Under the pieces are notes generated by a model. The model was not told where the DNA came from and searched no databases. It worked only from the letters and a program-made list of their open reading frames with translations. Shown one piece after another: positions 1,550-43,600 of a stretch of DNA of 64,000 bases. A program made the translations under genes and the position numbers. This DNA is from Auanema rhodensis (Eukaryota; Animalia; Nematoda). The DNA lies in contig OZ059896.1 in assembly GCA_964057225.1 (NCBI GenBank), positions 18,290,001 through 18,354,000 on the forward strand, written 5' to 3'. Every line of letters starts with the position of its first letter. Position 1 is the stretch's first letter.

Positions 1550-3872
1550 TCAATTAAAAGGTAAAGGACTGGCTTGCAGAGCACGTTTGCTACAGATTTG
1601 TAAAGCTTCAAAAAGTCGGAACAGACCTGTGTCTTTTGGTCTTTCCAAGCCTCTTCTTAATCGACGTCGCATCACAGCAATCATTTCATCATTTGAAAGT
1701 TTTCCATCCTAGAAGAAAAAAGGAAAATTCTAAGATTTAATGAAAATGATCTCACCTGATTATCATCAAAGAGTGTAATCACAATATCAATCATATGATC
1801 GCTAAGATCAACTTGTGCAACTTTTGTTGCAACTCTATATAACAAAATAAAAGATTTTAACAATAACATTAGAGTAAAAACCTTTTTAATAGAGGGCCTT
1901 CTACTGGTAATCCAGCCATTCGATGAAAATGAAGAGCCATATCAACATCATCTATATGGTATAAAAATTGAAAAAAATCAGAAACCTGTAAAACGAATAA
2001 TATATCTGTTAAATTTCAAATAATGTACCTCTTTATAGCAAACACCTGGACCATCTTTGAACTTTTTTCGAACACGCTTTAGCATATTCTTTTGCCTTTT
2101 TTCCGGAATCTAGAAAATAAACATCAACAGGTAAGCAGCAAATAGGAAAATTTACCTGAGCATGAAGTAGAAGATGCTGAGCGAAACTGACTTCTGTAAT
2201 AAGTCCATTTGAGCCATCTAACTGATCTCGTCTAGCAAATTCCATTTTCAAAATATCTTCATGCAAAGCTTTCTTAAATGATTTAAAATCAAATTAACAC
2301 AATTAAATAGAATAGAAAAACCTGAAATTCTAGAAACTTATCAGAAGATAATTTATTTGTCCCATCTTTTCCAAAAAAGTAAGTTTCTAATCCAGAATTA
2401 TTATCAGCTCTACATGTAAAATTAGGTGTTGTGTGATCTCGATGACGTTGCCCAACAGTAGTTTGAGACATGATCAAAGCCCAAAATATATCAATTAAAA
2501 TTAATAAACGAGTATATAAAAAACCTTTACACGTTCAAACTCAGCTTTGTCTAGTTCTCCATCCCCATTTACATCAAAAATTTTAAAAGCTAATGCAAAA
2601 TCGTTTGGAGATGCTGAAAAAACGGTGATATGCAATAACTATTAATAAACTAACTTGAAAGTAGAGTCATTAAAAATAAGTAATCACTAAAACTAATCAA
2701 TCCGTTTTCTCCCAATTTATAGAAAATACTAGACGGATCCATGAATTTTTGATGAAATCTCTGTAATATACGAAGTAAAAAATCGCAAGCAGAAAATGCT
2801 CACATCAGGATCATATACTTTGTAACTGTCAAGACCAAGTCGTCTGGGTTGCATAACTCCAGGAGTTAAAGATCTTAAAAAATCCTGAGGCATCATAAAA
2901 GGCTCATATGTTCTTCCACTGTCATCATTCTTATCAACTACCTAGAAAAGAGTAACCAATAAAAAAATACAAATTCTGATGTGAATATAGAAGGTGACAT
3001 GGCATAAGGTTGTTATCTTTCTATTATTAATATTATACAAATTCTATTTGTTCTATATATGTTATGTACTGCTAACATTAATAAAGGTGTTACCTTTAAT
3101 GTTGCAAAATAGCGAAATATTTTATCAGGTGTTGAATACATACGTAAGCGATCTTCATATTCGATTATGCGCCGTTCTCGAAAACCAAGCTTTTTACTCT
3201 TAAGTCTTCCAGTAGATTCCTCCTACAAAATCATTTATTGGCCTAATATATAGATTTATAAATCAAAATTTAGAAGTCTACTTCATTCTCGTGGTTATCT
3301 TCTGCATTTTCTTCCTTTTCCTCTTTCAGTTGGGACGCTGCAGGCTTGAAAGAACTACTTGCTTTTTCAAGCTGCTTTCCTAACCTGAACAAAAAAAAAG
3401 AATTCCAACTTCAAAGTATCGAAAATTCACCATTCATAATCCCAACACAAGATAAAGAAAATCGCTCCTACCAAGTAATAATTGAACTTGTATAGTTTTC
3501 TTAAAGGAGGCCAAATATACGGTCGATGCTGATAAATATTAGAGGAATAGTTTGAATAACCCGGAGCGACTTTTCTGTAATTCAGGAAAGTTGCATAAGA
3601 AATTTATATAAAAATGTATACCTATCAGTATAATGCCATACATCAGTTTTCTTTTTTATTCCACCAAACGGTGTGTACTCCTTCAAAGGGTCTATTTCCT
3701 ATGAATCATAAAATATATAATTATATTACGAAATTTAATATACTTGTACTCTATTCTCTTCATTTACAGATTCAGTAGGTTTTGTTCGATTTAAAGAAGA
3801 TAAAAATCTAGTATTATAATTTTGGTATATCCTATTACATATGATTCTTGAATGATAAGGTATAATTCTCAT
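1550..3872 (-). CDS. micu-1: MICU1 mitochondrial calcium uptake protein (EF-hand), multi-exon
   Basis: Presequence-like start [14 protein letters not shown]. Conserved segments [46 protein letters not shown]-hand [31 protein letters not shown] and [13 protein letters not shown]. Ends [11 protein letters not shown]. One intron (2481-2524) has no AG acceptor. Confidence 0.93.
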
Positions 3873-4737
3873 ACCTAAAACAAAATTATTTTTCTCTCTT
3901 GATCATTATTAATAATTCGTAAAATTAATAATAAGAAATAATGTTATTAAAATGAATAATATAATCCAGATAAAAATTTGATTAAATTGCTGAAGACTTT
4001 ACTTTCGAACATTAGTCGATTCCGACATTTGGTGAAGTATATTTTCAAACTAGTTTCTATTGATTAAAAACATCTTCAAGAAAGAAAATTGTGTAACTTG
4101 TACGAGAATTCCGACTATATGCGAGAATTAGAAAGCAAGAAGATTAACGAAATTCAAAGCGCATAGAGAAAGCTATAAGTAATTATGGAATGCTATTTGA
4201 TTATCACTGGAATAGTAGCCGTACAAATATTAATTTTGATTTCCTATTAATAATATTTATATTTCTTCCATCCATTTCTTACTTAAGAGAAACCTTAAAA
4301 ATTGTATTCTGATTTAAAATAGGAGCACCTTAGATATTTATTATGGTATAACATAATTTTATACATCAGCTGCAACAAAATTTATATCTCTAGCTTTTTT
4401 TAAAAGTAAACCTATTATTCAAACTAAAAAGTGAGCCCATTAATTATCTTCACAATTATTATTTTAAATATATTAAGAATTTAAAAAAAAGTCTATAAAT
4501 TTGATCAAACGGCAAAGCTGCGTCCAAACGAAAATATGAGTTGTATACAGGAACTTTTATACTTTGAAGTTTTCACCATAGTGTGAATTAAGTCAACAAC
4601 AATGTAATTATGTTATTCAAAGTATCTGTTCTCGATAGAAGACAAATTCCGGCACATTTTTTTTTGTATTTTATATTTATCTGACCTTGTTTTCTGTATT
4701 TCTTATATTGGTATATATCTCTTACAGGAAAGCAGGG

Positions 4738-6036
4738 ATGGAGTCCGAAAAAATGAATGCTAAGGGAAGAATTAGTAGAGTAACTACCAAGTACGCTTTC
4801 GTGAATACTGATAAAGGAACAGTTTTTTGTCCATTAGCAGCTTCAATTCCTACCACAGAACATGTTCCGGATATGACTGAACGTTATAAAGCTGGAGATT
4901 CAGTTCATCTAACAGCAGTATCTCAGAATGACAAAAATGGCTGCAAATGGAGAGCAATTAAGGTATGTTAAACATCAATTCATAATATTAACTTCATTTT
5001 AAAGTTGTAGATGCGAATAATCTGCGAACAAAAATCTTCGAACGATATCAGATCAGATATATCAGTGATACAACCCACAGATACTTTGGTAATTTGTTTT
5101 TTGGTTTATTTAAATCAAAAATTTCATAATGTTTGGCGTTCAATATTTATGTTTTACTTATCAATTTTGAATTGTTTGACTTTGCATAGGAGAAAATTAC
5201 AGACAAATTGATTTCATTTCACCGTCGAATTTTGTTAAATCTTGTATTAAATTTCAGAAATGTATAGCTTCAATCACTCGGCTCACAGAAACTTATGCCT
5301 ATTGTATATATTTGGGAGAACAAGTATTTGTACCAGGAGCGGCATTCAGTTCCACAGAAGTTACACGATTAAATTCGTATTTGAAACAAGGTGATATTGG
5401 TCTTTTCACAGATTCTAATATCAAATTATACAGGAGATGAATTAGAATTAGAAGTTCGGCAACAGTTAAAACATAATGACTGTAAATGGATAGCTGTTAA
5501 AGCTACGAAGTATATTAGGCATTCAGAAACTGTTTTCAAAGGTTTATATTTACTTATATAATTAACCTAATTTTATCAGGCCATGGAAGAATTAACGAAG
5601 TGTCAGCACTTTCCGCACATATTACAACTGATACACATGGAATACTTCAGTTACTTTTAAATTACTCTTTTGAGAATAATTTTTTTATTTCATGTGCTCA
5701 ATACTCACTTGGTCCGGTGGTGATGGAGGCCTATCAGCAACATGGCTCGATGAACTTCTCGCAGAGGGTATTTTGGGGGAACTTCATATTTTAAGGCCTG
5801 AAATACTTTTAGGTGACCACGTATCGTACTATGTAGCTGTTAGAGAAAACGGGTTTGAAGTAATAGCATGGACAGCCAGAGGATTTCTCCCTTGTGAGAA
5901 AAAATCTAAATCCATCTCTGTTGAAACTCAAACTGTTTCTTCAACCAATGATATCGTTATTAGAGCTTTTAGTTCTGTTCTACCGCTGTTGCTGGAAGAT
6001 AAGCCAGCACTGCAAATGTTATATGACATGAATTGA
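4738..6036 (+). CDS. Uncharacterised protein with three tandem OB-fold/S1/cold-shock-like repeats
   Basis: Three internally similar units: GRISRVTTKYAFV..GTVFC..YKAGDSVHL..CKWRAIK; ASITRLTETYAYC..GEQVFV..LKQGDELEL..CKWIAVK; GRINEVSALSAHI..GILQC..LAEGDHVSY. C-terminal SVETQT motif. The OB-fold call is an inference from the pattern. Confidence 0.7.
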
Positions 6037-6388
6037 AAGGCATGAAAACAACTGTTTACCAGAAATACGTTTTATACGGGAGAAAAATACGCACATTTTT
6101 TGCTGTGAATTTCATATGGGTTGAAATGCAAACTCAAGCATGTTGTTTATGTGTATTATGATACATCCACTTCTTTCATAGTATTTAAGAGCTTTTTTTT
6201 AACTTTGATTTCATTTATTTGCTTTGTCAATAGATCCTTCATATCAATATAACTGACATTTTCTTATATTTACTCATTACAAAAATTACGATCAGTAAAA
6301 ATTTCAAGTTAATCAAAATAATCACAATAATCTTGTGTTGAGTGTTAATTTATTTCGTTTGTTCGTTAGACGAGCGGTGATACGTAAC

Positions 6389-6791
6389 ATGAAGTTTCAA
6401 AATTTTTCTTGGAACGAGGAAAGACAATTTTTCAAAGTTAATAGCACGGAGTTCATGCCTGGGGTTGCTCGTGATGATATTGCATCGCTTAAGCTTAGAG
6501 CAAGTGGAACAACAATTGTTTGTGCCGTTATAACGGCTGTTAACCCTCCAACGATTCGTGATAATTCGGGTATTCAAAATGTTTTAGATTTAAAAAATGT
6601 GTTATTATGCAGGAACTTATGAAATCGCCGGGTTTCCGGCAGGATATAGTCCCATAGAAGGAGATGTTGCTCTTTTTCTATTTAACTGTAATTCAGCATC
6701 AATAATATGTGAACGTGTCACAGCTATTCCTCCTGATATTGTTCCTGTTTACATTAATATACTTAAAAAATATAAAGAAGAGTTTTCTTAA
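6389..6791 (+). CDS. Small (~120 aa) two-exon protein, possible RPA3/TEN1-like OB-fold subunit
   Basis: A GT-AG intron at 6570-6612 joins ORFs 6335-6622 and 6597-6791: MKFQNFSW...IVCAVITAVNPPTIRDNSG|TYEIAGF...[32 protein letters not shown]. The family call is an inference. Confidence 0.6.
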
Positions 6792-6960
6792 TACTTGGTT
6801 CAAATATCATGTGAAGAAATATCAAATATGTCATAATAGTCTTATATTTGTTTTTTCTTATTTTCTCTTCTTGATCTAGGGATCTTGGTTCCCTTTTTTT
6901 ATATTTGAAATATCATAACTTCTTCAAATTATTGTCTTTATTTTTGTCGATTGTACTGCT

Positions 6961-7794
6961 ATGGGAGTGGCTTGGGTATTCGAACATACCGGTTCAGCTC
7001 GAGAAATTGAACGATTATTGGAAGGAGGTGGTGCGGAACCGATTGGAACTTATTCCGTTGACTTTCTACCTTATTCTCCAACAGGAGCTGTAACTTTGCA
7101 TCTATCTATCTCTTAATTTCTCGAAATTTTTTTAGGTCGGGGTCGGCATTCAGACTAATTATGTGCTACATCATTCTAATTTTCCCCAAACTTCGTTTTC
7201 TATTGGTTAGTTAATTTTTTGTTTTTTGTTTGGTGCAAAATATATATGGTTTGTTTCAGCACCATCTGATACATTGAAGACTAGTCCTCGAGCCACATGC
7301 GACCGTGGTTTCGACCTTATCTTAACAAAAATGTCGGCTGGGCTACAACCTGATCATGCGGGTAAATTCACGGTTTGTATCTTATTTAGTGTATTCGCTC
7401 TCATCTTTCCGATTAGCTGACAGGTCATCAGTATAGATTGTGTGATTTTGTTGTTCGTGTCGGTACTGCTTCTCAAGTAACAGCTGTAAAAGGAGCTATA
7501 GTTGAAGTCTGTTAAACTTTTTGAAAATAATTTTGAATGATTTCTTACAGGTTGAATATGAACCTTCGCAAGTAGCTACTCAGGCCATAAACATGCTGTC
7601 AGAGTTTATGGCAAGCTATTTTCCAGCCTATGTATATTATCTTCGTTGTAGTATTTCTCATTTGATTTTTTCAGTCTGAAACTAGTAAAAGACCAGACGT
7701 GCTTAATCGTTCCGCGCCTGAGCCATATACAGCTTTAGACACAATGTGGCAATATCTGATTATTTTCCGACAAATGAGAAGTAGGAGCACATAA
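6961..7794 (+). CDS. mdt-20: Mediator complex subunit MED20
   Basis: MGVAWVF...[11 protein letters not shown]; [27 protein letters not shown]; [19 protein letters not shown]. These match MED20 motifs (MGVTCV, YCDFVIKVGT, VEVEY, DTMVQY). Five canonical introns. Confidence 0.88.
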
Positions 7795-7974
7795 TCAGGT
7801 TCTTATCAAATCTCATTCCATTACATTATTCATATGGGTATTTATACGCTGTTTTATGCTCGTTATTTCTAATGAAGTTTCTTTTATCGGATTATTTGTA
7901 CTAAATTTCGGTAAATAGCCAAATCTTATCTTTTCGCCTGCATCTTTTTCTCAAGATTTAAACATTAAACTCAG

Positions 7975-10295
7975 ATGATTCCTTCTGAATCATATGCTGT
8001 ATTATCAGATTTTCTTTTTGAAAATCTGGATACTTTGCGAGCACATTTCAACAGAAAATGCTCTGCATTAGAATCCTGGCAGGTATTTTGCACCCTTTTA
8101 TAAAAAAAGGTTGAACATTTACTTTCAGTTAGTATTTTATAGTATTTCATTCTCTTTGTTCATTTCTTGGTTTTTCAAACTTTTATCATCAGATGATTCT
8201 TTTTTGTCGCGATTCAGGTACATTTTCAATTTTATAATTTATGTTTGTTCTGTTTTTTAGAAAGTTAGCTTATCATGGCTTGAGAAGCTTACCATGGGTG
8301 AAAAGAAGACATCTCGCCAATTTAACCAAACTTCGTGATGAAGTTGATGAAGAAACTCATCAATGGGATAAGGTATCATTCAATTACTTTGTTTACTATA
8401 CCCTTTTGTAACTTGTATAGATTCGAGATTTTTACAAGTTTCTCCCCGAACGACCGCTAGGGAATGAAGAAATTATGGCTGAAGCTCGACAATATGCTGC
8501 TCTAGGGGAGCGAAGATATATGGAACACTATGATCCTAAAACCAAAACGGAAGATTTAAAGTTATCCTCACAGGTTTCTTTTTAAAAATTGTATATTACT
8601 TATGATCAATGCTTTAGATTTACGAACTATTTTCTCATACAGATCCCCATCGTTCTGATGCTTTCCCAGGAAATAGGAAAATGGAATCTGAGGTAAGTCG
8701 GTATTTGTATTTGTAAATTTTTGTTTTTTCTCAAAGATTTTACGTATGTGTTGCTCCATGTTCCATGGTGGTACGGAATCTTGCGGTGTTGTTGCTGGTG
8801 GTGGTACCGAAGCTACTTTACTTGCTTGCTTAGGTATTTTCAATTTTTCCTATTCAGACATATTAATATTTCAGCTTATCGTAATAGAGCGATTAGTAAA
8901 GGAATTGAAAGACCTGAGATCATTGCACCAGTAACTGCTCATGCATCGTTAGAAAAATGCGTATCTTTATTTGGTATGAAGATACATAGAATTCCTGTTG
9001 ATGAGAACGATAAAGTTGATCCCGATGTACTGAAATCTTATATTAATAGGAATACATGCATGGTGCATACATATTACTCGTAAAGTCTGCCATTATTGAT
9101 CCTGTTCTTCCAGATCGTAGCTTCTGCCCCAAACCACATTACTGGAACCACTGACCCCATTGAAAAGTTATCCGCGGTCTGCGGTAAAAAAAAACTTTTT
9201 TTTTTCAATTATACATTTTAGATTGCTATGGCCAGACGAATTCCGTTACATGTTGATGCTACTTTGGGTGGATTTATTATTCCATTTATGGAATATTGCG
9301 ATTTAAACAATAAAACTATAGATTTTCGATTGCCTGGAGTAACCTCAATAGCTGTGGATCTACACCGAGTAATATTTTGAAGAATCTTCGCACAACTCTT
9401 TATATATTTTTCTTAGTATGGCCAATGTCCTCGATCTTGTTCCGTACTCATGTACCGTAACAGTTCCTTTATTCGCTATCAGTTCTTCTCTAATCCATTT
9501 TGGGCCGGAGGCTTGTATGCGACACCTACATTGGCAGGAGGACGAGATGGAGGAGCCGTAGCATCAGCCTGGGCTACAATGCTTCGCAAGGTTTTTTTTA
9601 ACCCTATGTTTAAAATATGTGCTATTATAATATCAGGGACGAAGCGGATATATGGATGCATGTATGCGTGTTGTAGAAGGTACACATAGTTTAGCTGAAC
9701 TTCTGACTGGAGTAGAAGGAGTTGAGCTTAAAGGCAGTGCCGATATATGCGTTGTCGCTTTCACGTGCAAAAACATTAATGTTCACGCTTTGGTTGATCG
9801 AATGACACGAAAAGTATTCACAGTGGCGATTTTTCTTCCTTTATCTTGCTTGTTTCAGGGGTGGCACGTGGATGCTTTAATGTCACCAAGTGCTGCGCGA
9901 GTTCCAGTTACGTTATCTATGTGTGAAGATGGAGTGCTGGAAGCGTTTGCGAATGATGTTAGTCAGTCTATAAATTTCTTGAAGGAGAACCCAAGTTGGG
10001 TAAAAAGCAGCAAACTCGCCTCTTTCTACAATATGCTAAAAACAGTAATAGTTTTTCCTTTAATCTAATTATTGGCGTTTCTTTTGAGGTGACTGATCAA
10101 TCAATCTTGGACGAATTAGCACTTATTCGATTGGAATCTCACTACAGCATCCCTCAGTCATTAGACCGCCGTCCTCAAAAAACTTTAAGCGTTGAAGGCA
10201 GAAAAATGAGCATGATAGGGGCAGGGGATACTTATAAGCAACTTCAAGAATTGCGAGCTCGTTATGCGGTTTCAAAAAACGAAGACGCGAAATAG
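7975..10295 (+). CDS. Sphingosine-1-phosphate lyase-like protein (PLP fold), probably catalytically inactive
   Basis: N-terminal ESWQ plus TM segment; FPGNRKMESE, GGGTEATLLAC, PEIIAPVTAH, IPLHVDATLGGF, DFRLPGVTSIAVDLHRYG, GGLYATPTLAGGRDG. The Schiff-base Lys position is Arg (CGA 9366-9368). The ORF is intact. Confidence 0.9.
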
Positions 10296-10659
10296 TCACT
10301 ATACTTCTTTTGCTTCTCTGACTAAGCTGATCATAGTTGTCTAACAGGTTTTTTTCTTCGTCATGTTCTTCGCCAAAGCATCATCATTTTCAACGTTCAG
10401 ACGCTAACTTTATAGCGATTACATCTGCTATTTGTATATAATTTTCTTCACTTTTATATAGTAGTTGTATATTTTTTTGTATATGTATGTTTGTCAAAGC
10501 AGGTCTTCAAAAAAAACAGTAGTAAATAGATTTTCATGGCTGTTATTTTCAATTGCACTCCCTAAGGTCCTATCAGCTTTATCATACTTGTCATTTGTTG
10601 TTTTCTATCAATTTTGACAACTTCAAAACCCTTTTTTGTCATTTTTCAGTTGTTATGTG

Positions 10660-11366
10660 ATGTGGAAGTGGACTGCGCAAACGTACAACGTCACAGCTAT
10701 TATATTACTAGTAATTGCTGGAGTTTTACTACTTCTTCTGTGTACTCTTAGTGTATTTTTTTGTAGAAAAAGGTATGTTAGCTGTTCTTTTTATATAATA
10801 TAGACTACTTAGTCGTTGTAGAAGATCGGATTGGTTTGGTGAATCATCAGTTTTGGCTGCACCTTGGAATGAAAGTTCATGTTATAATGAAGCTTTCGAT
10901 TATGCCGATGAAACAAGTCCCTGGTAAGCTTTTTAAGGTGATAATTCAGCACAATAAATGAGCGTATTAAGGAGAATAGAACAAAGGAGATGCGCTAGAG
11001 AAAAAGAAGTTAGCAGTGATGGAACTACTAAAGTTGATCTCAACTTGCAAAGGTTCCTTTTTTTCCCTATTCCTGATGCAAATGAAAGTTATAGGCTCGA
11101 TCCTTCAGTTGGCGCAGCTTTAGCTGTAGAACAGCTATTAAGAGATAGTTATGTTTTCGATACTCGCCTGATGCCAAAGCCTGAAGCGGATGTTCGTATT
11201 ATTGCAGCCAAAAGGGATTATTTATAGCCTTCTATTATACATTTTTGTACAGATTGTTCATGTTATATTCCTGATACGGGTAATATTGAAGAAATGTAAA
11301 CTCACAGCATGCCATTTATAACATTTTCTCCTATACAGGTATCACCATATACGTAGTGTTCAATAG
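10660..11366 (+). CDS. Uncharacterised ~160-aa single-pass membrane protein
   Basis: MWKWTAQTYNVTAIILLVIAGVLLLLLCTLSVFFCRKSRCRR: a TM segment followed by a Cys/basic patch. Six exons can be joined in frame with GT-AG introns, ending EEMYHHIRSVQ*. Confidence 0.6.
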
Positions 11367-11483
11367 ACCTTATGAGATAAATTTTATAATTTCTCACAAA
11401 TTGTTTCAATGAGCATAAGCGACATACAGCAGAATCATAAAATGAGAGATCGCAAAGAAGCATAAATTCGGATGATATCACAA

Positions 11484-11993
11484 CTATGATGACTTAAGCT
11501 CCCACATAACAACAGGGAGGTCTGGACTTAGTCGAGGAATGGCATACTTTTCTTTGCCCTTAAAATTAATTATAGCATAATAAAATACTTAATAAAATAT
11601 AATTAAAAATTTTCAAACTTACTTTGGGTTTGATATTATCGATTACCCTACACAATCTTCTACGGGGGCCAATTAATTTTTCTGTTAAAAACTCATTTGC
11701 AACATCGCCATCTTCATCAACAAATTTAGAACTAAATCCAAGAACATCAATTAATATATCAAATGAGTTATATACCTCTGCGATTCTTTGACTAGAAAGA
11801 TATCCGGAATTACACCTCTTTCTTTTAGTAATTGAGCATATTTGGCCATTAGTTGATCAGATCTAATTTTAGGAGTAGTGACCTAAAAGAGATTAGTTAT
11901 ATCTACAGATTTCTTATACACAAAAACCTTATCATTGGGAGTTTCAGTCACATGCTCTTCTTTCTTTTTTAAACCACTGGAAAATTGCCCCAT
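11484..11993 (-). CDS. TUSC2: TUSC2/FUS1 (tumour suppressor candidate 2) homolog
   Basis: MGQFSS (N-myristoylation pattern)...SKFVDEDGDVANEF..RRRLCRVIDNIKPKG..IPRLSPDLPVVMWEL. Compare TUSC2 MFYDEDGDLAHEF...PRIHVDFPVILYEV. Four exons; not in the ORF track. Confidence 0.85.
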
Positions 11994-12847
11994 ATCCCTC
12001 GATGCATTGATATCATTTAACGCTAAATGTGAAAATAGTAAAAAACATATCCTGCTCATTTAAAACCGAAAAAAAAAACAAAGCATATAAATCCTAAAAT
12101 TTGTGATAAAGCTTACGTGATTTTTTAAATGGTTTAATTTTTCGAAAAAAATTATGGAATGGCTTGGTCTGCACTAGGGGCATTTCAGGAAGTTAAGGAA
12201 TAATGATAAGGGAACGAAATAAAAGCATAATAGACCCTGTTTATTAGAAACAGGTTTTAATTTTATACACACATCAAAAGCGGATTATTTAAATTAAAAT
12301 TGTTTCTCGTAATATGTGAATGTTGCGTCAAATGTACACGTAACATTGAAAAGCGAACCAAAATTTAATCTCTAACAATATTAATATTTTAATATATTTG
12401 AAAAAAAAAACAAGTGTATGTAGGTAAAATATTGAAAAGTTAATCAGGTTTTTTACATAGCTAAATTCGTTTATTTTTTTAGCAAATCAAGAGTGAAGCA
12501 GAATTAAGGAAAGAAAATGAAAAATGTGAAAATCATGTGCTTCAATTCGGACGGACTATTCAAATATCGATTACTTAAAACTAGTATTTCCGCAAGTTTG
12601 CGTACTAACGTACTTTTTCAAATTAATTCCCAAAGTGATTTAGTTGAACCTGCATATGTTCTACGATGTGTTGTTAAAAAATGTATTTAGTTTAAAGATT
12701 TTCGATTTTTAGAAGAATTTAAAAAAGTACTTACTTGGAATGTGAAATGTTGCAGCCAAATCTAAAATTAGGCTAGTTGGAGCACGGTTTTATAAGATCT
12801 AATGAGCGTTGTTTTCTTTGAATACTTTCTTAAAGTCAAATGACAAA

Positions 12848-12910
12848 ATGTTATTTTGATGTAATCAGGTGACGTGAACGTTTGTATTCGAATATGAATG
12901 TTTATTTTTA
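12848..12910 (+). repeat. Diverged direct repeat, copy 1 (other copy 15744-15807), flanking the UGT gene
   Basis: atgttattttgatgtaatcaggtgacgtgaacgtttgtattcgaatatgaatgtttattttta. Confidence 0.55.
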
Positions 12911-13125
12911 CACTAATCTTTAACAATATTATTATTGATTTACACCCGTTTTTCTTTTTGTTTTTTTATTTCATGTGCTTAACATATTTATAATGTTGTT
13001 GAAGTAATACCGCAATATCATACGAGAAGAAACCAGAACAATGCGTTATTGATAATTCATGATACTTAATTGTTAAAACAGTTTCACTATTCTTTCCATT
13101 CATATATGGATATAAAAAATAAAAG

Positions 13126-15300
13126 TTATTCAATTTTTGATTTTTTTGTTCCTAAACATAATCTATAGCATTTCCTGATGATGAAAATCACGGCACATAA
13201 GATTGATATAACACTAAACAGTACAAAACACAGTACATCTATTAAATAATATTGGAAGAAGTTTAGATGGCGAGCGTTTGATTCCAAGTTTGGGATTCTG
13301 CCAACCCTGGATCATATTAATTATTATTTTTTTTGTCTCAAATCTTACTTTCCAGCAAATTCTACATATTTTATCAGAGTGGCTTTTCCATTGTTTGGAC
13401 TGTTTTTGAGGATGAATGATAAATTTTCAGCATCTTGCTTATATCTAAAAGGTATAAGATATCACAGTTCAAATATGGAGAATCTACTTAGGATTTTCGA
13501 GTATTGTTTTAATAGCTTGGTGTAGTTCGTCTTCTTTCGCTAAAACGTTTTTTTCTAAAGCTAATGATCCTCCATATCTGGATATCATTGCAGCATTAAC
13601 TTGTTGATCACCAAATAGAGGTATCTGAATTTCAATAACACTACGAAAATTCAGAAGCATTTATTATTTTTATAAAGATATAATATAAACTTACAAACAG
13701 TGCAGGTTTGCCTAAATAAGCTACTTCGGTAGTACTTCCAAGTCCACCATGAGTTATGAAAAGTGTAAGACGAGGATCACTGAGAAGAAGCAACTGTGGT
13801 ACCCATTTCACCAAATAAACATTAGGGAGGTGTTCGCAGATGGTAGAATGCTCTTCATATTTCCAGATAAAAGTTACATCTTCCATTTTTTCGAATACGG
13901 ATATGAGAGATTTTCTGAAGAGAAGTCAGTCCAGTCGCTTGCATATTTTATTTTACTTGTACTCTTCGGGCATATCTTTACCTTTAGCCATGGTGCCAAA
14001 AGAAACCAAAACATTCGTTTTTCGCTTGCTCAGAATTATATCGAAATCCTGGAAGTTGACAAATTGAAAGTTGAACTAATAACATTCGTGAAACATACGC
14101 CTAGAGTTTCATTAGCTTGTATGGTCATATCAGTAACAATGCCACCTATTTCAATAGTTTTTTTATTAATAGGTCTTGGGAAAGAGAGGTAGGGGTGAGC
14201 GTTAGTGAAAATGTATGAAACTTCACCCATTAAATCCTGAATATTTTTTTCTTATAAAACGATGAACAAATATAATAACCAAATACGTTTTGAAATCATC
14301 TCCTAATATTTCTTTAATTACAGCTTCTTCCCCATATAATATCCTTTTGCAAAAAAGTTTACCAAGTACAAACTGTATGCCATTTGACACACGGTCCAAG
14401 AAATCAAGTTTGGTGGATCCTGTAAACATAGATCCAGGAACAAAACTAGGAAAGATAGGCTCTCCTAAAATAAAATGAAAGTTAAAAATTTGTTTTCACC
14501 TAAGGGATTACCGATAAATTCTGATACCATTTCAACATAACCTGTAGAAAGGGCTCCTATTGTAACTGGAATTTCCAAATGTTCGAAAATTGCTGAAAGA
14601 AAAAAAAAGAAAATGAAGATAATTTTTGAATGATAAGTACCGAAAGGGCATACGGAGGTGGGTTCGGCTATCCCTATATCAAACTTTCTTTTTTTAATAT
14701 AATTTAAGAGGTGCTCGTTCGAAAGAAGACCTTAATATTGTGGCAATTAGAATATTACTTCCAAGCTGTAACTTACTTTTACAGTTTTTAGACATCATAA
14801 TAGTAATATTGTTAAAAAACTGAAAAAAAGGATTCAAAAATATTTGATAAAAAGTGCTATTATACATTCATCATAGTTAATGGGTTTTGATTCGTGCTCC
14901 ATAGCTCCCTCATCAAAATTTCACGACCTTGTTCCATAAGATCATATATGGATTGATCTGATGGAATCAAATGAACATCTTTTGTTTTTGTTACACCAGT
15001 TTTCGTCAAACTTTTATCCAAAATAGGGCTGATAACAGTCTGTTAAGAAATCATAAATATCGTTTGAATTGTAAAAATGTACTCACAACATCGTGGCCTC
15101 TTTCAGTCAAAGTGTCTGCTATTTTCCCTAGATAATTTGAGTGTGAATGGGCAAAGATTGGTGAATATATAGCAATTTTAAGAGGTTCGCCAAGTGCAAC
15201 ATGAGTAATTACTAAACAGTGATTAAAAGAAAAAAGTAAAGAACGAAAACATACCAGTTATATACAGAGAACATAATGTAAATATTGAAATATACTTCAT
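13126..15300 (-). CDS. UDP-glucuronosyl/glucosyltransferase (ugt family)
   Basis: Signal peptide; KIAIYSPIFAHSH..IADTLTERGHDV; UGT signature WVPQLLLLSDPRLTLFITHGGLGSTTEVAYLGKPALFIPLFGDQ; C-terminal TM segment and KKSKIE* ER-retrieval-like tail. Confidence 0.93.
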
Positions 15301-15743
15301 AACTTTGTGTATTTATCAGTTCATCAAGACTCGAAAGTCTTAATTGATTTTGTTCAAATTATCAAGTTGGTTTTTTGATTGTCTTCAATTTTTCTCGAGA
15401 TCTTGCGTACATTTTCTGAGCAGAGCTCAAGGCTGGTGCTGAACATTTGAACATCTCAGAAACTATCTCGTTGAAAAAATAAATGAACTTGCTTTTATCG
15501 GCGATTTTAGGTTATGAAAGTTGATATATGCTATTTTGAAGTTTTGTGGTGTTTTGATCGGCTTCTTTAATACAAGCGAGCTGATCTGTAAATTAAATGC
15601 TTAAGAGGTTTTTAGCTTATTCTTAAGCATTAGTCCACGTGTTTAGCTTGTTTAAGTATTCAAAAATAAAGGTTTTATCAGATCGGATCAACATTATGTT
15701 TTTTTAAATTGACTTTATTTAGAATAGTGAAATGGCGTACGTT

Positions 15744-15807
15744 ATGTTACTTTCGGGTAGTACAGATGACGTGAGCGGTTGTATTTTAATTCGAATGTTT
15801 ATTTATA
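15744..15807 (+). repeat. Diverged direct repeat, copy 2 (other copy 12848-12910)
   Basis: atgttactttcgggtagtacagatgacgtgagcggttgtattttaattcgaatgtttatttata. Confidence 0.55.
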
Positions 15808-16267
15808 TAAATTATCTACTGACATTTCAACTTCGTGTCTAAAAATGAATTCAAATATGAAAAAAAATAATATAATTAAGATCAAGCACAAATTTAAAAA
15901 AATACAATAAAATAGATGTTCTTATAAAGTTATCATTAATCAATTCATCTATTTATATTGTAGGAGAAATACTACAAAAGGTTATTAATAAATTGTTTGT
16001 ATAAAAATATTTCAGACTTATGACGAAAGCATTTATTAATTTCTCTCAAATAAACATATCCAGAAATAGTGTAGTATAGCTCCATTACTTAAATGAATCT
16101 GTATGATTACATACTGGATTTAGAGCTAATCAGATAAGAATATCCATAAAAATGATGCTTGATTCTCAGTGAGCACGAGGCATTCGCCAGAATGCAGACA
16201 CCTGTCTATTGTTTCCTTTAACAAATTGTTCTTGAACTAATTTTCTATTCTATCTTTTGCAGGTAAA

Positions 16268-22477: not shown

Positions 22478-25400
22478 ATGGACAGAGTAAATTATTGAAA
22501 AAAAACTTTGTTTTAATACAAATACGGTTTACAGGCTGTGGAGTTGGAAAAGATGCACTTGACACCGGAGGAACTTGTTCTAGTCACTGATGTTACTCAA
22601 TGGCTTGGATATGTTCCACCAGTAGAAGAAGCCATACTAGAATTCCCTTTAGGTAGCTTGATTTAATTTTTGTCAGAGGTGAAATTATCCTTTTCAGAAT
22701 ATGAATATTTTGTAAATCACGCAAAAGCAATGAAAAATAAAGAAAAGAAAAAAGCATATTTACGAACAAAACGAAGACAAATTATTGCATCGTCATATCA
22801 TAGAAAAGATAAAACGTTCGAATAAAGGTTTTCTGCCGTTATATATTTTTATATAATTCAGAACGCCCCCTATTTGTCTTGTTTGTACGAACCCAGATCC
22901 AGAATTTTGTCGAAATGCTGGAACTTTAGTTTGGCTTCCTAATTTTCCCGACTTCTTCGGATTCCATGAATTTTGCATGGTATATTTTTATAATAATTTT
23001 AATCCAGCTCATGATTTGTTCTTTAGTTAATTACGCCCGAATGTTATTGTGCTCAAGATGCGACACGCCTAGAACGCCATTTCTTTAAACTCAGTATTGA
23101 ATCTCTTTTAGGGGCCTTTAAGCGCCTTATTACAGGAAAATCTGTACGACTATCACAATAATTGTATAATATATGTATATATCGTTTCAGACATTAGATT
23201 GTGCATATTGCGGTTTTCGAGGAGCTTTCTCTGGCTGCAGCATGAAAAGATGCAATAATGTTTATCATTTACCCTGTGCTTTACGTTCCTCATGTTATAT
23301 ATCTTACACAGAGGGTGAACATAGGTTTGTATATAAATTTTGATCTTGAATAATTTTTTATATTAAAGTATTACTTGCCCGACACATGTAGATTTTCTTA
23401 AATCGAAACAAAGAAATATTATTGAAAGGATATTCCCAGGTGGATCTCTGAAGAAAAGTGACCAGAAAGTCCTTTCCGGTGAAAACGCAACTTTGAAGTG
23501 CTCATATTGCAAAGCTCGACTTCGTTTCGACGGGGAGAGTACTTGGTTGGGGCGTTTTGTTATTACAAATTGTGACAATCGTATCTTAGCTTATCATTAT
23601 GAATGTATGCAGGTATAGTTTGAACGTTATTATTTCTCAAAATAATTTTCTATTTTTAAGGATTATGTAAGAAGCTGTGGCTATGACGCTCGATGTCAAC
23701 AATGCCATAATTTAAATAGGGTTACTATGTTTCATGAGCACCTAGCTCAACAAGGAGTTTATATTAATGACAGGTTGGATGAAAGTTTAATTTTTTTTTC
23801 TAAATTTGTTTCTCGATTTGTAGTAATGATGAAGATGATGACGACTGTGATGCATTTTCGGTTTCTTCCTCTGACTCTTTAGAATATTTATCTTCCGGTG
23901 AAGAATTTTTGCGTGTAACACCCACTCATGACTACTATTTCAAACGATCTGAATATAATCCACTTCCAAGAAAGAGAATGAAATATACAATTGTATGTTT
24001 ATTCTATTCACCTTTTCTATTTATTCGTCTGTAGGATAAAATTAACGATATGGACGCTTCAACTTCGGATGCAGTTGCTAACAATATAGATTTTGAAAAA
24101 ATAAAGGATATGCCCTCAACTTCCACTGCCGCATTGGAGTACCATACAAATACGGAACCAGAATCAGCTCAACAAAGAATTCCATTCCGGGAGCTGACAC
24201 CTAACCGTCACACTAGCGGTGAGGAACTGCAAGCTTCCATGGAACAAGTGGTAGTATCTAATCAATATTCAGCTGATGGTGAATCGCCAGCTTCAATAGA
24301 AAAGAAATCTTCATCCACTGAGTTTAACCATTATTCCTTTATTCAAGTAATCTATTGCGTTCAGAACTAATAAAGCTGATTCCTCGGATATTCCTGATGA
24401 TTTACCTATTAGTCAATATCCTAGGTTAGTTTTTTGCTCAAATTAAGTTTTAAATTTATATTTCAGTCCATGTGCTCATTATAATGAACCTCTGTCGCTT
24501 CCTCAAAGGTAATTTCTGTATATTTTTATTTCCATTAAAACAATTTTGGTTTCAGTGATATCATTGATGTTAGTTCTGATCATGATATCAGGTATGCCTA
24601 AAAGTTGGTTTGAATAGAAAGTATAATCTATATTTTCAGTAGTGATATAATTATCATTGGGGTAAACAAAACGGCCGATAACAGTAAGACTAATATATCA
24701 GCCCGGACCTCGCTTTCTGTTCGAGAAGTTCTTAGTAATAGTAAACAGGAACCTCTTGATGAATACGAAGAACAACCTGCGGAATACTTTGAAAGCAATG
24801 ATATTGCTAGTTTGAGTGATGCTGTTGAATCTACTCACATAATCGATGGAGATCGCCCAACTACTTCTGCAGCTGGATCTGGTGACCATGATGAACAAGC
24901 ATTAGCAAACAAAGATTTATCTAATCCTGTAAAAAGAAACATTATTGAAAATAATGAATCAGTTATGGTGGTGTCTTCAAAAGCCTCTAATCATGTTGTT
25001 AATGGAGAAGTGGTTGTTCCTTCGCCAAGCATGCCAGATACTGAAACTTTGGGACCAGTATCACCTTTCGTGGATAACTCTCCAGAAATTGTGAATGATC
25101 GTTTCTCCGAAGAATTGAATGCCGGTGCTCGATCCGTGGAAACAGCATCGTCCGCAGAATACGCTAATAATGGTTCAGGAAACAAACTCACAACTAAACA
25201 AGCCGAGATGAGAGAGTTGCCAACAGAATTAGAGTTTGTTTATTAATCATGATTTGTTTTTTAACTATTGTTTAAGGGCCAACATGGAATACAACAATCA
25301 TATTGATAGCATGTAAGTTATACCAATTTACATGAAGATTCTAATTCAACTTTCTTTGCAGGGAACAGCCCGTGCCAATGCATTCACCTCCTGACCCGAT

Positions 25401-31039: not shown

Positions 31040-34000
31040 CTAGTCATTTTCGTTGCTGATATCCAAATAGAAAGCATTGTCTTCTAAGCCTAACGTTTGA
31101 GTTTCGGTATCTCTCAGGAAATCCAATGCGTGATCCATGCTCGTGCCAGCATGCCGAATAGTATTTGATTCTTCCCTAAATACAATTTAGAAAAAGGAAA
31201 AGTCAAGAAATTGTTTAAATCTAATGAACTATGCTAAAACTTTAATTCGTATATGATATGATTGTACTAACCCATTTAATAGTGATTGGTCTATAATTGT
31301 ACCGAAACTGCGTGTTTCAACAGATTCAGCTGGGTTGTACGGCGTATAGGACATGGCGATATTTTGCCTAAAAACTGCTTAATAAGAACTATTTAACACC
31401 TGAATAGGTGGTCTTCTTCAATTTGTTTTTTTTTTCAATTTAGAAAGAGTTTTTAAAGAATGAAATTTTAAATAAAAATGTTTCAATGAATAAAACTTCT
31501 CCATTCTTTAATAAATAAAAAAAAACTTTTAATTTTGAACTTAGTTTAAAATCTTTTCAAATGTGCCTGTCTAATAGGGCTCTATAATGACAATCTCTCT
31601 AAGAAAATTTAATTTATTCAGTTTTGTAGCAAGAAAATATGACTTAATAATCTAAATTATCGATTAAAGTCCCAACTACTATCAAAAATATAGAAGAGAT
31701 TACTTTATACATTCTACTAACCTTATAGTATCAGTATTTTGTGTATTATAGCCAAATGAAGAATATTCATTGCTGTTTTGAGATTCATAGTTTATAAAGT
31801 TGGAGTCGCCGAATGAAAAATCTGTACCCGTAGAAATGTGACGAACATCTTAACAACACTTTTTTGAAAAAAAATTAAGAACTTCAAAATTTGTTCTACC
31901 TGGAGTATGAGATTCAGAACAATAGAATGAGGTATGTGGTAAAGAGTTATACTGACCCGAAAAATCGAAAGATTGTGGCAAATCCTAATAAAGAAATTGT
32001 AAAAAGACGATTAGAATGTGAAAACTTCACATTGCCAACGCCTACTGTAGATGTCTGTGGCAGGAATGTTGATGTTTGAGCTTGAACAGCTACTTCGCAT
32101 GTTGTGCGTAAAGAACTTCAAGCGAAAAAAAAACATTATTTTGAACTTTTTAAAGAGATAACCTTGAGATTCGTTCTATAGTTGCTTGAACATCATCAGT
32201 TGGGACTATGATTATAGTTGGCTGAGGAGCAGTAATCAAGGAAGTTACATCATTAGATCTGAAAACATCAAAAGAATTAATATAGGATAATGCTATAGAA
32301 ATGATTTGCCTCTGACGACAATCAGGAGTTGATCTTGTTTGTAAACTTTTCGAAAGCTTCCTGTTGCTAGAAATCGGTAGTTCAGCGGATGACACAGGTC
32401 TGATATCTAAAGCAACCCATTAAAGATCATATTAGATAGGAAAAAAAGATTTTTTTGTTTTTTCAAATCTCTTTCAATATGTACTAAATCACCTTATCCA
32501 TTCAATTTTGTGCTTTTCTCAAATCAAAAACAAATGAAACTAGAAGTCTCAAAAAGCCTGTTACGTAAAGTGCTTTGCCGTTTACGGAAGTTTTTTTTGT
32601 TATATTATTCATGTGTATTACACATCAATTGCTGGGTATCTTTTTTGGCTATTGCTTTGTTTCAGACAACGACCTTGGTAAGCTTGGAGGCCGCACTTGA
32701 CGGACTATATAAGGGCATTTGGCAGGTGGTTGATCAGCAGTCTCAATATGAGCGCCAAAGTTTTAGCTACTCTTGCCTCCGGAGCTTCCGGAATCGTTAT
32801 TTTAGCATGCCTCGTCATGGTAGGATCTCTTTTCCAAGAGATCAACACCTTATACGATGATGTTATGGACGACATGAACGAATTCAGAGTAGGAATAAGT
32901 TTCATTTCAATTTTTTAATAAAATTGTTCAGATGGTCGCCAATGAAGCCTGGAAGGACATGATCATCCCAACTCAAGCTGGAGCCAGCCACAGAAAGATC
33001 GGAACCATCTTCGGACGTAACAAGCGTGCTGCTGGACAATGCTCTTGCGGAACTCAACCAAACAACTGCCCAGCTGGACCACCAGGACCACCAGGACAGC
33101 CAGGAGAGCGCGGAGAAGATGGACTTCCAGGAGATGCTGGAAGAGCCGGAACCCCAGGAATCTCTATCATTAACGTTGAAGACAACAAGGGATGCATCCA
33201 ATGCCCAGCCGGACCACCAGGACCACCAGGACCAGACGGACCAGCCGGACCAGCTGGACCTGACGGACAATCTGGAGCCCCAGGAGCCCCAGGACAAGAC
33301 GGACAACCAGGAGCTGCTGGACCACAAGGAGATGCTGGATTCCCAGGAGCCAATGGAGAAAATGGAACCCCAGGAGCTCCAGGAGCCAATGGACAACGCG
33401 GAAAGGGAGCCCCAGGACCACAAGGACCACAAGGACCACAAGGAGCCCCAGGAAACAACGGAGCCCCAGGAGCCGACGGATACCCAGGACAAAACGGACC
33501 ACAAGGACCAGCTGGACCTAATGGCCACGATGGACAAGCCGGAACTCCAGGACAACAAGGAGAAGCTGGAGGAGAAGGACTTCCAGGATCTGATGCCGCT
33601 TACTGCCCATGCCCAGCCAGAACTGGAGCTGTTGAGTCCGAGACTGCCAGTCAAGGATACAGACGCCGTTTCTCCAAGGCTTAAGCTAAAACAGCTCAAT
33701 GAAAATAAAGACTTGAATCGCTTAATAACTGTTTTTATTGTTTTCTCATATATACACTGAAATGATGATACATTGAAAAACCAGATTAAAATTCTATTGA
33801 AACAGAAAAAGTTTAAGATGACCTTTTAAACATGTTTTATGTAGCGTTTGATATATATTTTGAATTAACCAAGGCCATTTAGATTATTAGACTTGATATC
33901 AGTCGAACTGGTCCCACCCAACTATAACTTTCATAGGAAAGGTCATAAAGAAGATAAAAACCTACGTAAGTCCCTGGACATGCAACGGGACTTTTTATGA

Positions 34001-34487
34001 TAAACAAAATCCTTTTGAAGAGCGAACCTGGTTCCGCATTCACAAGCTATAGTTTTCTCAGTATGTACCTAAAATAACGAATATTGCAATTTTGTATTGT
34101 CAAGTTCGAGTCAAACCCGTAAGTAATGTTGCTTCAAATTCCGCATTCCGTCAAACTTAACTTTACGTTTCATGCAACCCTCTACTGGGCAGTGATAGTA
34201 AAACGTCCGGCCTAATTAAAAATTTTATTGGAATATGACATATTTCGTGAAACCTAGTCCATCTGAAGCTTTGCAGAATATTCGCTTATCTTCAATAGAA
34301 ACCACTATTTTATGAGTTTTAACTCTATGTAGTCTCAACGCAGAAACGTTAGAAAATCAAAACAACAGATATAGATGAAACAAGAAATAAAGAAAAATAC
34401 TTACGATTTATCACATATATCACATCGCTTAGTCGAATCTTCCCCCAAAATTTCGTCTATGTTTGGATACAAATCCACTACTGACAT
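31040..34487 (-). CDS. ATMIN: ATMIN/ASCIZ-like zinc-finger transcription factor with multivalent dynein light chain (LC8)-binding tail
   Basis: [15 protein letters not shown]...[22 protein letters not shown]...[58 protein letters not shown]. Compare ATMIN FYCCPIEGC...VKQHFMKMHAEKKHKC. A phase-1 intron (32407-33965) leads to a disordered tail with [24 protein letters not shown] and RDTETQT; stop TAG 31040-31042. Confidence 0.82.
32704..32715 (+). promoter_or_regulatory. Probable TATA box of the collagen gene
   Basis: CTATATAAGG about 40 nt upstream of the collagen ATG. Confidence 0.55.
32748..33684 (+). CDS. Nematode cuticle collagen, nested antisense within the ATMIN intron
   Basis: Col_cuticle_N TM/coiled region, RNKR furin site, CSC...[17 protein letters not shown], Gly-X-Y repeats and AAYCPCPAR. 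One intron at 32889-32931. Strong GGA/CCA codon bias. Confidence 0.97.
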
Positions 34488-34619
34488 ACTAGAGTCATTT
34501 TGTCGTAAATGGTATTTAACTATTTTGATGAGCATATAAGAAAATGTTAACAACATTAAGTTTTTATAATCAATTTAAGAATAAATATTTATTGCGATAA
34601 ATACACTATATATAGCATA

Positions 34620-39179: not shown

Positions 39180-39469
39180 TCATGACATTTTTTATTTTGG
39201 TTTTATAATTTCTGTATATAAATGTTTAATATAGTCAGTTAACAAATTTGATAGATTTTAAATATTTTCCTTATAATTGCTGTAAGCTCTCAAAAGGATT
39301 CGCTCATGCATGTTCACTTATACAATGTGATATTGAACCGCTTTACCTTAACTTATAATTTTTCCACATGTGAATAAATTTATTAATATTTACCCAGCTT
39401 TGAAATTCATCGAAACCAAAAATTTAAAAATAGTATTTACAAAATCCTAATTGCTCATGTCTTGAAAGA

Positions 39470-40438
39470 TCATTTCATTAAAGTAACAGCAGCCAAAGTG
39501 AAAAATGTACTAGCTATGATGAAAGACAATTCTCTAAAATTACAACTTTGAATAAGTATGAAATGAATTTGGTGTTTACCTATAACTTGGGAATTGATCA
39601 ACTGAGAACTCTACAGATGGTATTTGAGCGCCTGGTTCACAACCATCTTTTTGTAAAGTGAGAATAATATTTTCCAACTGGAATGAGATACAAAGATTAA
39701 TCTAAATCAAGAATTTGATAAAATGTACTTGTTTGTCATCTCCATCAAAAATAAACCGAACATCGGGAGGACGAGAGAATTTGTCTGGTGCAGCATGGAA
39801 CTAAAGTAAAAAATCGCTCTGTACTCTATGTAAAAAATATTATACCATTTCTAATACAGCTTTTTTCATCTTTTGTTCTTCAGTATTAAATAAATACACA
39901 TTAGCTACATGAAATTGGGGTTGAAAGACTATAGTTTTCACCTATATGAAACATAAGTAGGTGGTATTTGATTCCTTAGCTTACCATTCCTTTAGAAAGA
40001 TAATCGTCAAAAAAATTTTCCCACGGAATCGGAGGAAGTTTTTCATTCAGCTTCCTATATTCATTTCGTCTTCTGAATTATAAAATATTACTATGTGTAC
40101 AAACGAATTTTACAACCTATAAAGCAAAATGCCGTGAGTAGATAACCAGATGAAAAGAAGACAACCTCCTAGAGCATAGGCACGGCGAACTTTGGCTGAA
40201 AAAATAAAAAAAAATAACGAAAAACAATTCTATGAATACCTTTATCTTGTTTAGATTGTCCAGATTGTTGCTTTTGTTCACCTTCTTGTGTAAATTCAGA
40301 CGTAGAGGAAAAGCCGCGTTGTGAAATTGAAGGAACAATGCGTACATAATCGGTAAAAAGTGAATGCCTTGAAGCCTGTACAGATGTTAGAGCAAGCTTC
40401 GAGCTTCTTATACTTCGAAGAAGTAATCTGGTAGCCAT
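39470..40438 (-). CDS. Mitochondrial two-TM protein with only the m-AAA protease N-terminal (FtsH_ext-like) module
   Basis: Presequence MATRLLLRSIRSSK; TM (AYALGGCLLFIWLSTHGILLY); PPIPWENFFDDYLSKGMVKTIVFQP (compare AFG3L2 ITWKDFVNNYLSKGVV); second TM (LSFIIASTFFTLAAVTLMK*) followed directly by the stop. Seven exons, canonical introns. Confidence 0.75.
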
Positions 40439-40651
40439 TTATATCAAATTTTTGTTCACTGCAAAAATTTTAAAATATAACGTGCGATTGAAAATACCTA
40501 ATTAATGAGCAGTGGAAATGACACTCCTAGATTACGTATATTAGATAGATAACGGAAACGAGCATGCTTTCCTGGAATCTAAACTTCATGTTTTGTAGTT
40601 AATTCTTGGAGAATAATTTTTCTTGTTTAAGAGTTTTTTGATTTTACGTAT

Positions 40652-43600
40652 ATGCCCACTTGGCCTATTGGTGGCATGGAATTTCGTTCACTCATATATA
40701 ATGCTGCTGCATCCAATAACTTAAAGAGACTACAAGTAGTTTAAGCTTTTAATTTTTTTTGTTCAATATTTTTTTCCGGTTTTCCTTAATAAGCCTCGTA
40801 GTCCCGAGTGGCTTGAGCGTTGTCTTAATTGTACACAAAATGGATCGATTCCTTTGGTTATAGCAGCTTGTAACGGTCATTTAGAAATTGTTAAATATTT
40901 GGTAATATTCTAATCAGGGTCAGTGTTATTCTTCTCTTATAGGTTAGTAAAGGAGCAGATCCAAATATTCGCGGTACTGCCTTTATCGAAGGAGAAGTTA
41001 TAGGTATTAATTTTTGCCAATTTTGCTCCTAAAGTTTTTTTGCATTCAGAAGCTGCTCCTCCTCTTTGGGTAGCTTCAGCAGCAGGTAAATATGACGTAA
41101 GTGTTTTTACCCTTTAAATTTTACGACGTATAAAATTTCGCAGGTTGTTGAATATCTTGTAAATGAAGCTGGTGCTGATATAAACTTAACCACTGGAACG
41201 AATAGTACTCCATTGAGAAGTGCATGTTACGATGGTCATCTTACAATTGGTATGATTAGATTGCTCTACTGAGATGATTTTTTTAATAGTGAAATTCTTG
41301 GTTGAAAATGGTGCAGAAATAGAAACCCCTAATCTACATGGTCATACTCCTCTCATGATCGCTGCTTTCAAAGGAAAAGTTTGAAATATCAGATTAGGCA
41401 AAACTAATAGATAAGCACATTTAGACTGAAGTTGTACGCTATTTGCTTGAAAAGGGGGCGGTTCTGTCAAAACGTAGTTGTAAAGGTATAATTGTTAAAT
41501 AAACAAAATATATTTTACATACATAGGTAATACTGCACTGCATGATGCTGCTGAAGGAGATCACCCTGATGTATGTGAAGTATTATTGAGCTATGGAGCT
41601 CAAATGGTGGAGGATGAATTTGGGTTATGCCCGTTAATCGGCAGTGCATTATTGGGCAATGAAGGCGTAAAATCATTTCTTGTTGTCGGAGCTTTATTTT
41701 TTTTTCTTAGGTTATTCCCATTTTACTAAAATATTGCAAATCTAATATTCTCAAAAGGGATGCACTTAAATTGTTAGGAAGCACGCGATGTGATAAAAAG
41801 ATGGACATTCAAGGTGCTGTTAGTTCATGGAGAGAGGCTGTATCAATTCCATTGACCTGTGAAGAAGAAATGGTAAATGCTCTTATATAAAGTGTTTTGA
41901 TAATTCATCCCAATCCATGAATTTAGGAGTTGTTAAAATCTAACAGAAGTTACGTGGTTCACAAAGTATATGAGTGTGATTCTGAGATAGAAAGTGTGGC
42001 AGACATAGATGAAATCGATGGACAACCTGACGCTATATATATGCAAGTAAGATACTTTTTTATACTTTTGTTGATTCGAATAATAGGTCATTATATCTTT
42101 CCAATTAAAGTCTGGAACTTCAAAGCTTGAAATTGACTAGTTCACGATTTTATTTTTTAAAATTATTCTTTATTGTAGTTACCCTCTGTGTTTCCTATAA
42201 CTGATACCATTTCGTTTGTTCAGTATATCTTAAGAAGTACCTAATTAGTCTTCACAATCCTTTATTTCACTTTTATTGTAGTTTCCTGATTGACGATTAT
42301 CTTTCTCCTTATGTCATCCTGCCGACAGTCATAGTCGTTTGGCTAACGTCTTGAAAAGGATATTTAGTACACGCGATCGGCTGTCCATGTATGAAAGACA
42401 GGATTTATTGTTCTCACTAATTGTATCATTAGTTGCATACTTTATCACCTTTTATCTTTCCGAACCTATCTTAGAAATTATGTTTTCTTTTAGAGTCTTG
42501 TCATCAGAGAAAGAGTCGTTGGTCCACGTCACACTGACGTTCATTATTATTTACGATATAGAGGTGCCATATACTGTGATACATCCCGCGTACAAAGGTG
42601 TTTCCAATTATGGTTTCATGCTCTTAATTTGCAACAACTGTAATTAACTTTTATGTGCTACTATAAAAATTCTTTTTACTTTAAGATATTTACCACCTTT
42701 GCACATACATACAGTTGCCACCTTCCAAGCTTTCCAAGAAACATATGTTTTAGCTCTGAATGAACAAGCTAATAGAATAGATCAGGGAGGATGGTCAGTC
42801 AAACCAGAAAACGTTGGACAAATATACCATAAAGTTTGTTTTGAATTGGAGAGGGTAATCATTTTTTATTTGATTTCTTTACCTAAAATACTATTAAGGC
42901 GTATAATCAAACTGGGCCTCCAACAAGGCAGCCATGTGATATGCGTGACGAACATGACTCAAAAAAAGAAAAAGATGATTTAGTTTTAGTTGCTTTACAT
43001 CTTTTGTTATTGGTATTAATTAGCTTATACTCTACGTATTATAATGCTTATTTTAAGCTGTATAGACTCTCCCTTCCTAGATATCAGCCGCTTGGAGGTG
43101 GAGGTTCCACTACTTTCATTGACGTTGGCAGGTGAAATAGATTTCTTTTATTCACTATAACTATTAGAATTTAGATTAGTTCTAATATGTTCAAGATTAC
43201 GCCTTCTCCCTTTACATCTGGCGCTTACCGAGACAGAAGGACCTGAATATGCTCAGTAAGGACATTTCCTCTTTTTTTTTTACTGGAAGTTTCTTCCAGA
43301 TTTCCTTCCAATTTTGTCGTTAAACTGCTCGTTCGAGCCCACACTGACCTGACAGCTCGTAATAGCGATGGTAATACCCCGTTACATCTTCTACTCTTGC
43401 ATTTGAAGCCTCGGTATATCAGTAGTAATTTTAATAATTGGTAATCTGAATGATTTAGTGAAAGCATTGTACGAATGCTATTATCAGCAGGCGCTCCCAT
43501 TCTTGCCAGAAATAATGACGATAACACATGTCTTGATTTGATTGAATTATCCAGGTTAAAATCTGTTCGCTCAGGTGAGAAAGTTTCAAAAAAACTAAAA

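Follow-up and report, generated by a model that had tools for sequence, protein, structure and literature searches.

The AG dinucleotide that ends an intron is among the most fixed signals of eukaryotic gene expression. In Caenorhabditis elegans, the compilation of Sheth et al. holds only 11 non-canonical introns of the U2 type (PMC1557818). Mutants of C. elegans have been described in which 3' splice sites are used independently of AG (Aroian et al. 1993; Zhang & Blumenthal 1996, both cited by PMC4484395 and PMC10946897), and the two citing papers report splicing at a mutated TTTCAA that is supported by the TTTC tract. In the C. elegans germline, the acceptors TG, AT and GG are used naturally at three sites, the only three reported genome-wide (PMC4484395); these sites are alternative ones, have no pyrimidine tract and lie at most 18 nucleotides (nt) upstream of a strong consensus AG. 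Here we describe four introns of the nematode Auanema rhodensis that begin with GT, end without AG and are probably still removed at these original ends. They lie in a 64-kb stretch (GenBank assembly GCA_964057225.1, contig OZ059896.1, positions 18,290,001 to 18,354,000), which is called the window below.

The first of the four introns is intron 8 of 13 in the MICU1 gene (1550-3874, minus strand, 14 exons, about 538 amino acids) and occupies 2481-2524 on the minus strand (GTTTTT...ATTTTGG, GT..GG, 44 nt, phase 0). The second, at 5650-5693 on the plus strand (GTTACT...TTTCAT, GT..AT, 44 nt, phase 2), interrupts a gene that encodes three S1/OB-like repeats and a DUF7930 domain (4738-6036, plus strand; the OB gene). 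The third, at 34358-34404 on the minus strand (GTAAGT...GTTTTG, GT..TG, 47 nt, phase 2), is intron 1 of an ATMIN/ASCIZ-like zinc-finger gene and splits zinc finger 1. The fourth, at 40736-40778 on the plus strand (from GTAGTT to an end in TTTTTTTCCG, GT..CG, 43 nt, phase 0), is intron 1 of fem-1 (40676-43773, plus strand), whose ankyrin-repeat exons are intact to the stop codon. A sequence-only reading of this stretch had proposed four GT-nonAG introns, and direct reading of the bases found all four with exactly the coordinates, ends and lengths that had been claimed; the non-AG 3' ends are thus real in the assembly. The 5' end is GT in every case, none of the four has a 3' AG, and sliding the junction never restores an AG without changing the mRNA. 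The four changes are all of a different kind (GG, AT, TG and CG), and each is a single substitution away from a normal acceptor (TTTTAG or TTTCAG), as that reading had also stated. G at position -1 is kept at three of the sites and A at position -2 at the fourth, so that no site has lost both. All four introns have a T-tract right before the 3' end, with an intact UUUU(C)-type tract at the altered acceptor, and a length of 43-47 nt that falls within the mode of the window (41-48 nt).

The appendicularians Oikopleura and Fritillaria, which have many non-canonical introns, resemble the window in their compact genome, their introns of very small size and their relaxed splicing rules; their non-canonical ends differ in lying mostly at the 5' end or in forming other pairs. 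With the AG-independent mutants of C. elegans, the four introns share a short length, a UUUUC-type tract before the end, the change of one AG base and an original end that is the expected cut. Those mutants carry laboratory mutations with reduced function, whereas the altered ends in the window would be the wild type at about 2% of introns, in genes that are conserved. The dinucleotides TG, AT and GG are also those of the proximal acceptors in the C. elegans germline (Ragle 2015, PMC4484395). Unlike the germline sites, the non-AG site in the window itself carries an above-average T-tract and has no good AG nearby, the next ones lying at +15 to +43. The terminal pairs GT-GG, GT-AT and GT-TG recur among the non-canonical U12-type introns of vertebrates (Sheth et al. 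2006, PMC1557818), from which the four introns differ in having no U12 5' or branch-site box and in having the architecture of nematode U2-type introns.

How firmly the protein places each junction was judged from homology searches of the spliced models that were run one exon at a time. The MICU1 exons on either side of the GG intron (2322-2614, minus strand) align without a gap to human MICU1 and to MICU1 of Auanema sp. JU1783 (P0227). On human MICU1 (4nsc_A), the upstream exon aligns with residues 146-171 and the downstream exon with residues 174-225, which puts the join at 172|173 with no gap; on the JU1783 protein, the two exons cover residues 273-301 and 302-354 and join at 301|302. The OB gene matches Pfam S1 weakly and, in its third repeat, Pfam DUF7930; both here and in the Auanema orthologue, exon 6 enters the DUF7930 profile at position 26, and the number of residues between THG and SILTW equals that of the orthologue. 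In the ATMIN gene, the join restores the finger C-x2-C-x12-H-x4-H, the match of exon 2 to the C2H2_ASCIZ zinc-finger profile (weak, E 0.085) starts at position 17 of 34, and any slide of the junction alters the mRNA. The fem-1 junction is not fixed by homology: designed ankyrin proteins dominated the matches of its exons to PDB, where the 20-residue first exon found no match. The first residues after this junction, VFLNK, may align with KLLSG of human FEM1A, which is a lead only. Thus the earlier claim that the protein demands each boundary holds by homology for MICU1 and the OB gene, leans on finger spacing and a weak profile match for ATMIN, and is least certain for fem-1, because an in-frame AG lies 15 nt downstream.

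Comparison with the sister species indicates how the altered ends arose. The closest protein found for MICU1 of the window is its counterpart in Auanema sp. JU1783, with 80.5% identity; the protein and contig look-ups yielded nothing from A. rhodensis itself, and exact look-ups of the collagen ORF, the MICU1 exon ORF and an Auanema collagen gave no hit. The JU1783 gene has 13 introns, all GT-AG, whose positions are shared with the window gene in 13 of 13 cases. The MICU1 gene is therefore otherwise intact, and it matches its orthologue exon for exon, in line with the description of the affected genes in the sequence-only reading as conserved and otherwise intact. The JU1783 counterpart of the GG intron, at the same position and phase, measures 43 nt and has TTTCATAG as its 3' end; that of the AT intron in the OB gene is 45 nt long (GTGAGT..AATCAG) and lies in the same codon, in phase 2. 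TTTCAG stands at the same MICU1 intron position in a metagenome contig of a more distant nematode as well. The comparison of orthologous introns that had been proposed was thus made for MICU1 and the OB gene, and in both the JU1783 intron at the same position and phase ends in AG. Because the orthologous introns in JU1783, and for MICU1 also in the metagenome contig, end in AG, the non-AG ends are, by this comparison, derived single-base changes in old introns.

To place the four introns among their neighbors, we used a signal-based gene finder that was written for this study and trained on the 64-kb window itself. The window has 33% G+C and carries a nematode cuticle collagen gene whose best matches are in rhabditids (C. 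remanei, 69%). When only AG ends were allowed, the gene finder predicted 13 chains with a coding sequence of 27.5 kb and 213 introns, of which 147 measure 41-48 nt. The lengths of these 213 introns are tightly clustered at 41-48 nt, and their 5' splice-site consensus is very weak, with G at +5 in 41% and A at +3 in 56%. The acceptor is relaxed at position -3 as well (TAG 78, CAG 73, AAG 32 and GAG 2 in 185 short introns). When any 3' dinucleotide was allowed at a penalty of -3.9, -6 or -8 nats, the parse, now of 12 chains, gained exactly the MICU1, OB and fem-1 introns and one artefact. The gain from the non-AG ends was 12-21 nats at the penalty of -3.9, and they were still preferred at -8 nats. 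The gene finder does not model the first exons of the small ATMIN gene. With the ATMIN intron counted, the non-AG rate is 4 of about 214 introns, or 1.9%, which bears out the rate near 2% that had been estimated before. A true rate of at most 0.1% would predict no more than 0.2 such introns, with a Poisson probability of about 7e-5 for four or more. The mirror control, in which non-GT starts were allowed, gave none at -6 nats and at -3.9 nats only three, all marginal (1.5 nats or less) and of non-modal length. Nothing notable was found among GC-start introns within the window.

The tract before the altered ends was scored without the last two bases and compared with that of the 185 short AG introns. 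The four non-AG sites fall at the 85th, 100th, 59th and 100th percentiles, and their mean score of 4.70, against 2.08 for the AG introns (resampling P = 6e-5), comes from only four sites and may be biased, since non-AG introns with a weak tract would be harder to recognise. Such a pattern is to be expected if only introns with a strong U-tract tolerate the loss of their AG. The earlier proposal that the U-tract and the intron length set the acceptor finds indirect support in these strong T-tracts, in the modal lengths and in the very poor AGs downstream.

These AGs bear on the leading alternative, in which the non-AG ends exist in the DNA without being used, and other AG sites or intron retention yield an altered or reduced protein, or none. 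The next AG lies at +43 in MICU1, +35 in the OB gene, +24 in ATMIN and +15 in fem-1, in contexts at the 0-3rd percentile, the poorest in the window, and gives introns of non-modal length. Two of these AGs are in frame and could in principle be used. The ATMIN site at 34334-34335 (minus strand, 3rd percentile) would give a 71-nt intron, delete 8 residues and destroy the spacing of the finger; the fem-1 site at 40792-40793 (plus strand, 0th percentile) would lengthen the intron to 58 nt at the cost of the residues VFLNK. In the OB gene, the first downstream AG would make a 79-nt intron, and a canonical in-frame route also exists, in which 5650-5693 is read through and 5694-5737 (plus strand, 44 nt, GT-AG) is removed. 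The length of this detour is modal and the frame is kept, but the context of its acceptor ranks at the 1st percentile and the conserved CSILTWSGGDGGLSA segment is replaced; that a 44-nt GT..AG interval directly follows the AT intron is probably a coincidence. The MICU1 intron has no AG inside, its next AG, 43 nt inside the exon, is not in frame, and there is no in-frame alternative. The alternatives as a whole would sacrifice residues that are conserved in Auanema, human MICU1 or DUF7930, or would break zinc-finger spacing, and the lengths of 58, 71 and 79 nt are rare ones. Mutated acceptors in C. elegans reportedly function at lowered efficiency (Aroian et al. 1993), which would speak for this alternative. 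Four damaged genes among about 15 in the window would nevertheless be far beyond a normal load of null alleles, and all four genes are otherwise intact. We therefore regard it as unlikely that these ends go unused.

Besides the small T-tract sample and its possible bias, the in-frame AGs of fem-1 and ATMIN and the canonical detour in the OB gene weigh against removal of the four introns at their non-AG ends. So does the result of the same gene finder in 22 kb of Auanema sp. JU1783, where non-AG introns numbered 0 of 61, a sample too small to say much, as about 1.2 would be expected at 2%. The trait may therefore be confined to the species of the window.

The altered bases could also be assembly or base-calling errors, or minor alleles, with AG as the true bases. 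This would agree with sites that are each one change from AG and all follow T-runs. Random errors should strike GT as often as AG, and the count is four against none (binomial 0.06); neither would they select the introns with the strongest T-tracts (P = 6e-5). Errors at about 1% would scatter stop codons over the 27.5 kb of predicted coding sequence, in which the models run in long chains, and would hardly leave a MICU1 gene equal to its orthologue in every exon or fall as four changes of four kinds. Because the sample of T-tracts is nonrandom and GT is not struck, both random errors and recent null alleles are argued against, and we see only a slim chance that the true bases are AG. That the four are minor (U12-type) introns or are excised without the spliceosome is highly improbable: GT-GG, GT-AT and GT-TG are indeed listed among mammalian non-canonical U12-type introns (PMC1557818), but the 5' ends GTTTTT, GTTACT, GTAAGT and GTAGTT are not [AG]TATCCTT, none of the four has a TCCTTAAC-like branch box at 10-15 nt from its 3' end, a T-tract abutting the end is the signature of nematode U2-type introns, the orthologous Auanema introns in MICU1 and the OB gene are plain GT-AG introns of the same size, and U12 introns are absent from C. 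elegans (PMC1557818).

It appears likely, then, that the four are ordinary major-spliceosome introns of a rhabditid nematode in which the terminal AG was hit by one substitution. The AG would have been lost by a change of A to G, T or C at position -2, or of G to T at position -1. In nematodes, the main mark of the 3' end is a short U-tract to which U2AF binds, and in introns of about 45 nt its distance from the 5' end hardly varies. A strong U-tract would then be enough to place the second cut, provided that G(-1) or A(-2) is kept and no other AG competes. That the RNA is cut at the non-AG ends, and how efficiently, is inferred from the DNA sequence. On a simpler reading, the ordinary nematode machinery already tolerates such ends, and this lineage may merely let the mutations persist. 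More tentatively, it is possible that the 3' end of short introns is set by the U-tract and distance rather than by AG, so that A(-2), and less often G(-1), is dispensable throughout the genome, about one in 50 introns is constitutively spliced at NG or AT, and a relaxing change specific to this lineage has occurred in U2AF35, PRP8, SLU7 or PRP18; the genes for U2AF35 and PRP8 lie outside the window. Tolerance of non-AG ends is known in nematodes; what would be new here is its frequency and its occurrence in constitutive introns of conserved genes. Our literature searches turned up no nematode in which non-AG acceptors are described as naturally more frequent than usual.

Other non-AG introns proposed by the gene finder were rejected. 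The artefact in the parse above, a 166-nt intron at 6782-6947, merges two adjacent genes. At this place (6787-6961, plus strand), two genes on the same strand lie about 170 nt apart, the first ending in ...KKYKEEFS and a stop codon and the second, Med20-like, beginning with MGVAWVFEH..., and this spacing, which looks operon-style, is the cause of the invented intron. A very lenient run gave extra candidates that were all artefacts, among them 23774-23814, with a normal AG site 9 nt further on, and 61457-61499, with one 2 nt further on. The Gly-X-Y repeat of the collagen exon keeps open frames on both strands (32932-33684, plus strand; 33054-33699, minus strand), which led the gene finder to false antisense exons and false GC-donor introns.

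The order of genes around MICU1 and the OB gene is kept between the two Auanema species. Positions 1500-16000 of the window correspond to 1-12239 of a JU1783 locus (L002, contig CALQYR020007199.1), and the common order is MICU1, the OB gene, Med20 and a gene of the pyridoxal-dependent decarboxylase family, probably sphingosine-phosphate lyase, with a receptor guanylate cyclase probably next. The orthologue of the OB gene is intact at 8404-9556 (minus strand) of L002, yet the gene calls for this locus do not include it.

Standard gene predictors and splice-aware aligners assume AG, and they would give broken or distorted models at introns of this kind. The AG-only parse of the window illustrates this: in MICU1 it makes a 131-nt intron and loses about 44 residues (EFERVK through ...NFTCR), including the most conserved segment, and in the OB gene read-through of the intron takes the place of the conserved CSILTWSGGDGG segment. 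If removal of these introns at their non-AG ends is true, a free-living and culturable nematode with about 2% of its constitutive introns lacking AG would be a natural system for studying how the 3' end of an intron is found, and it could separate the contributions of the small subunit of U2AF and of the second-step factors.

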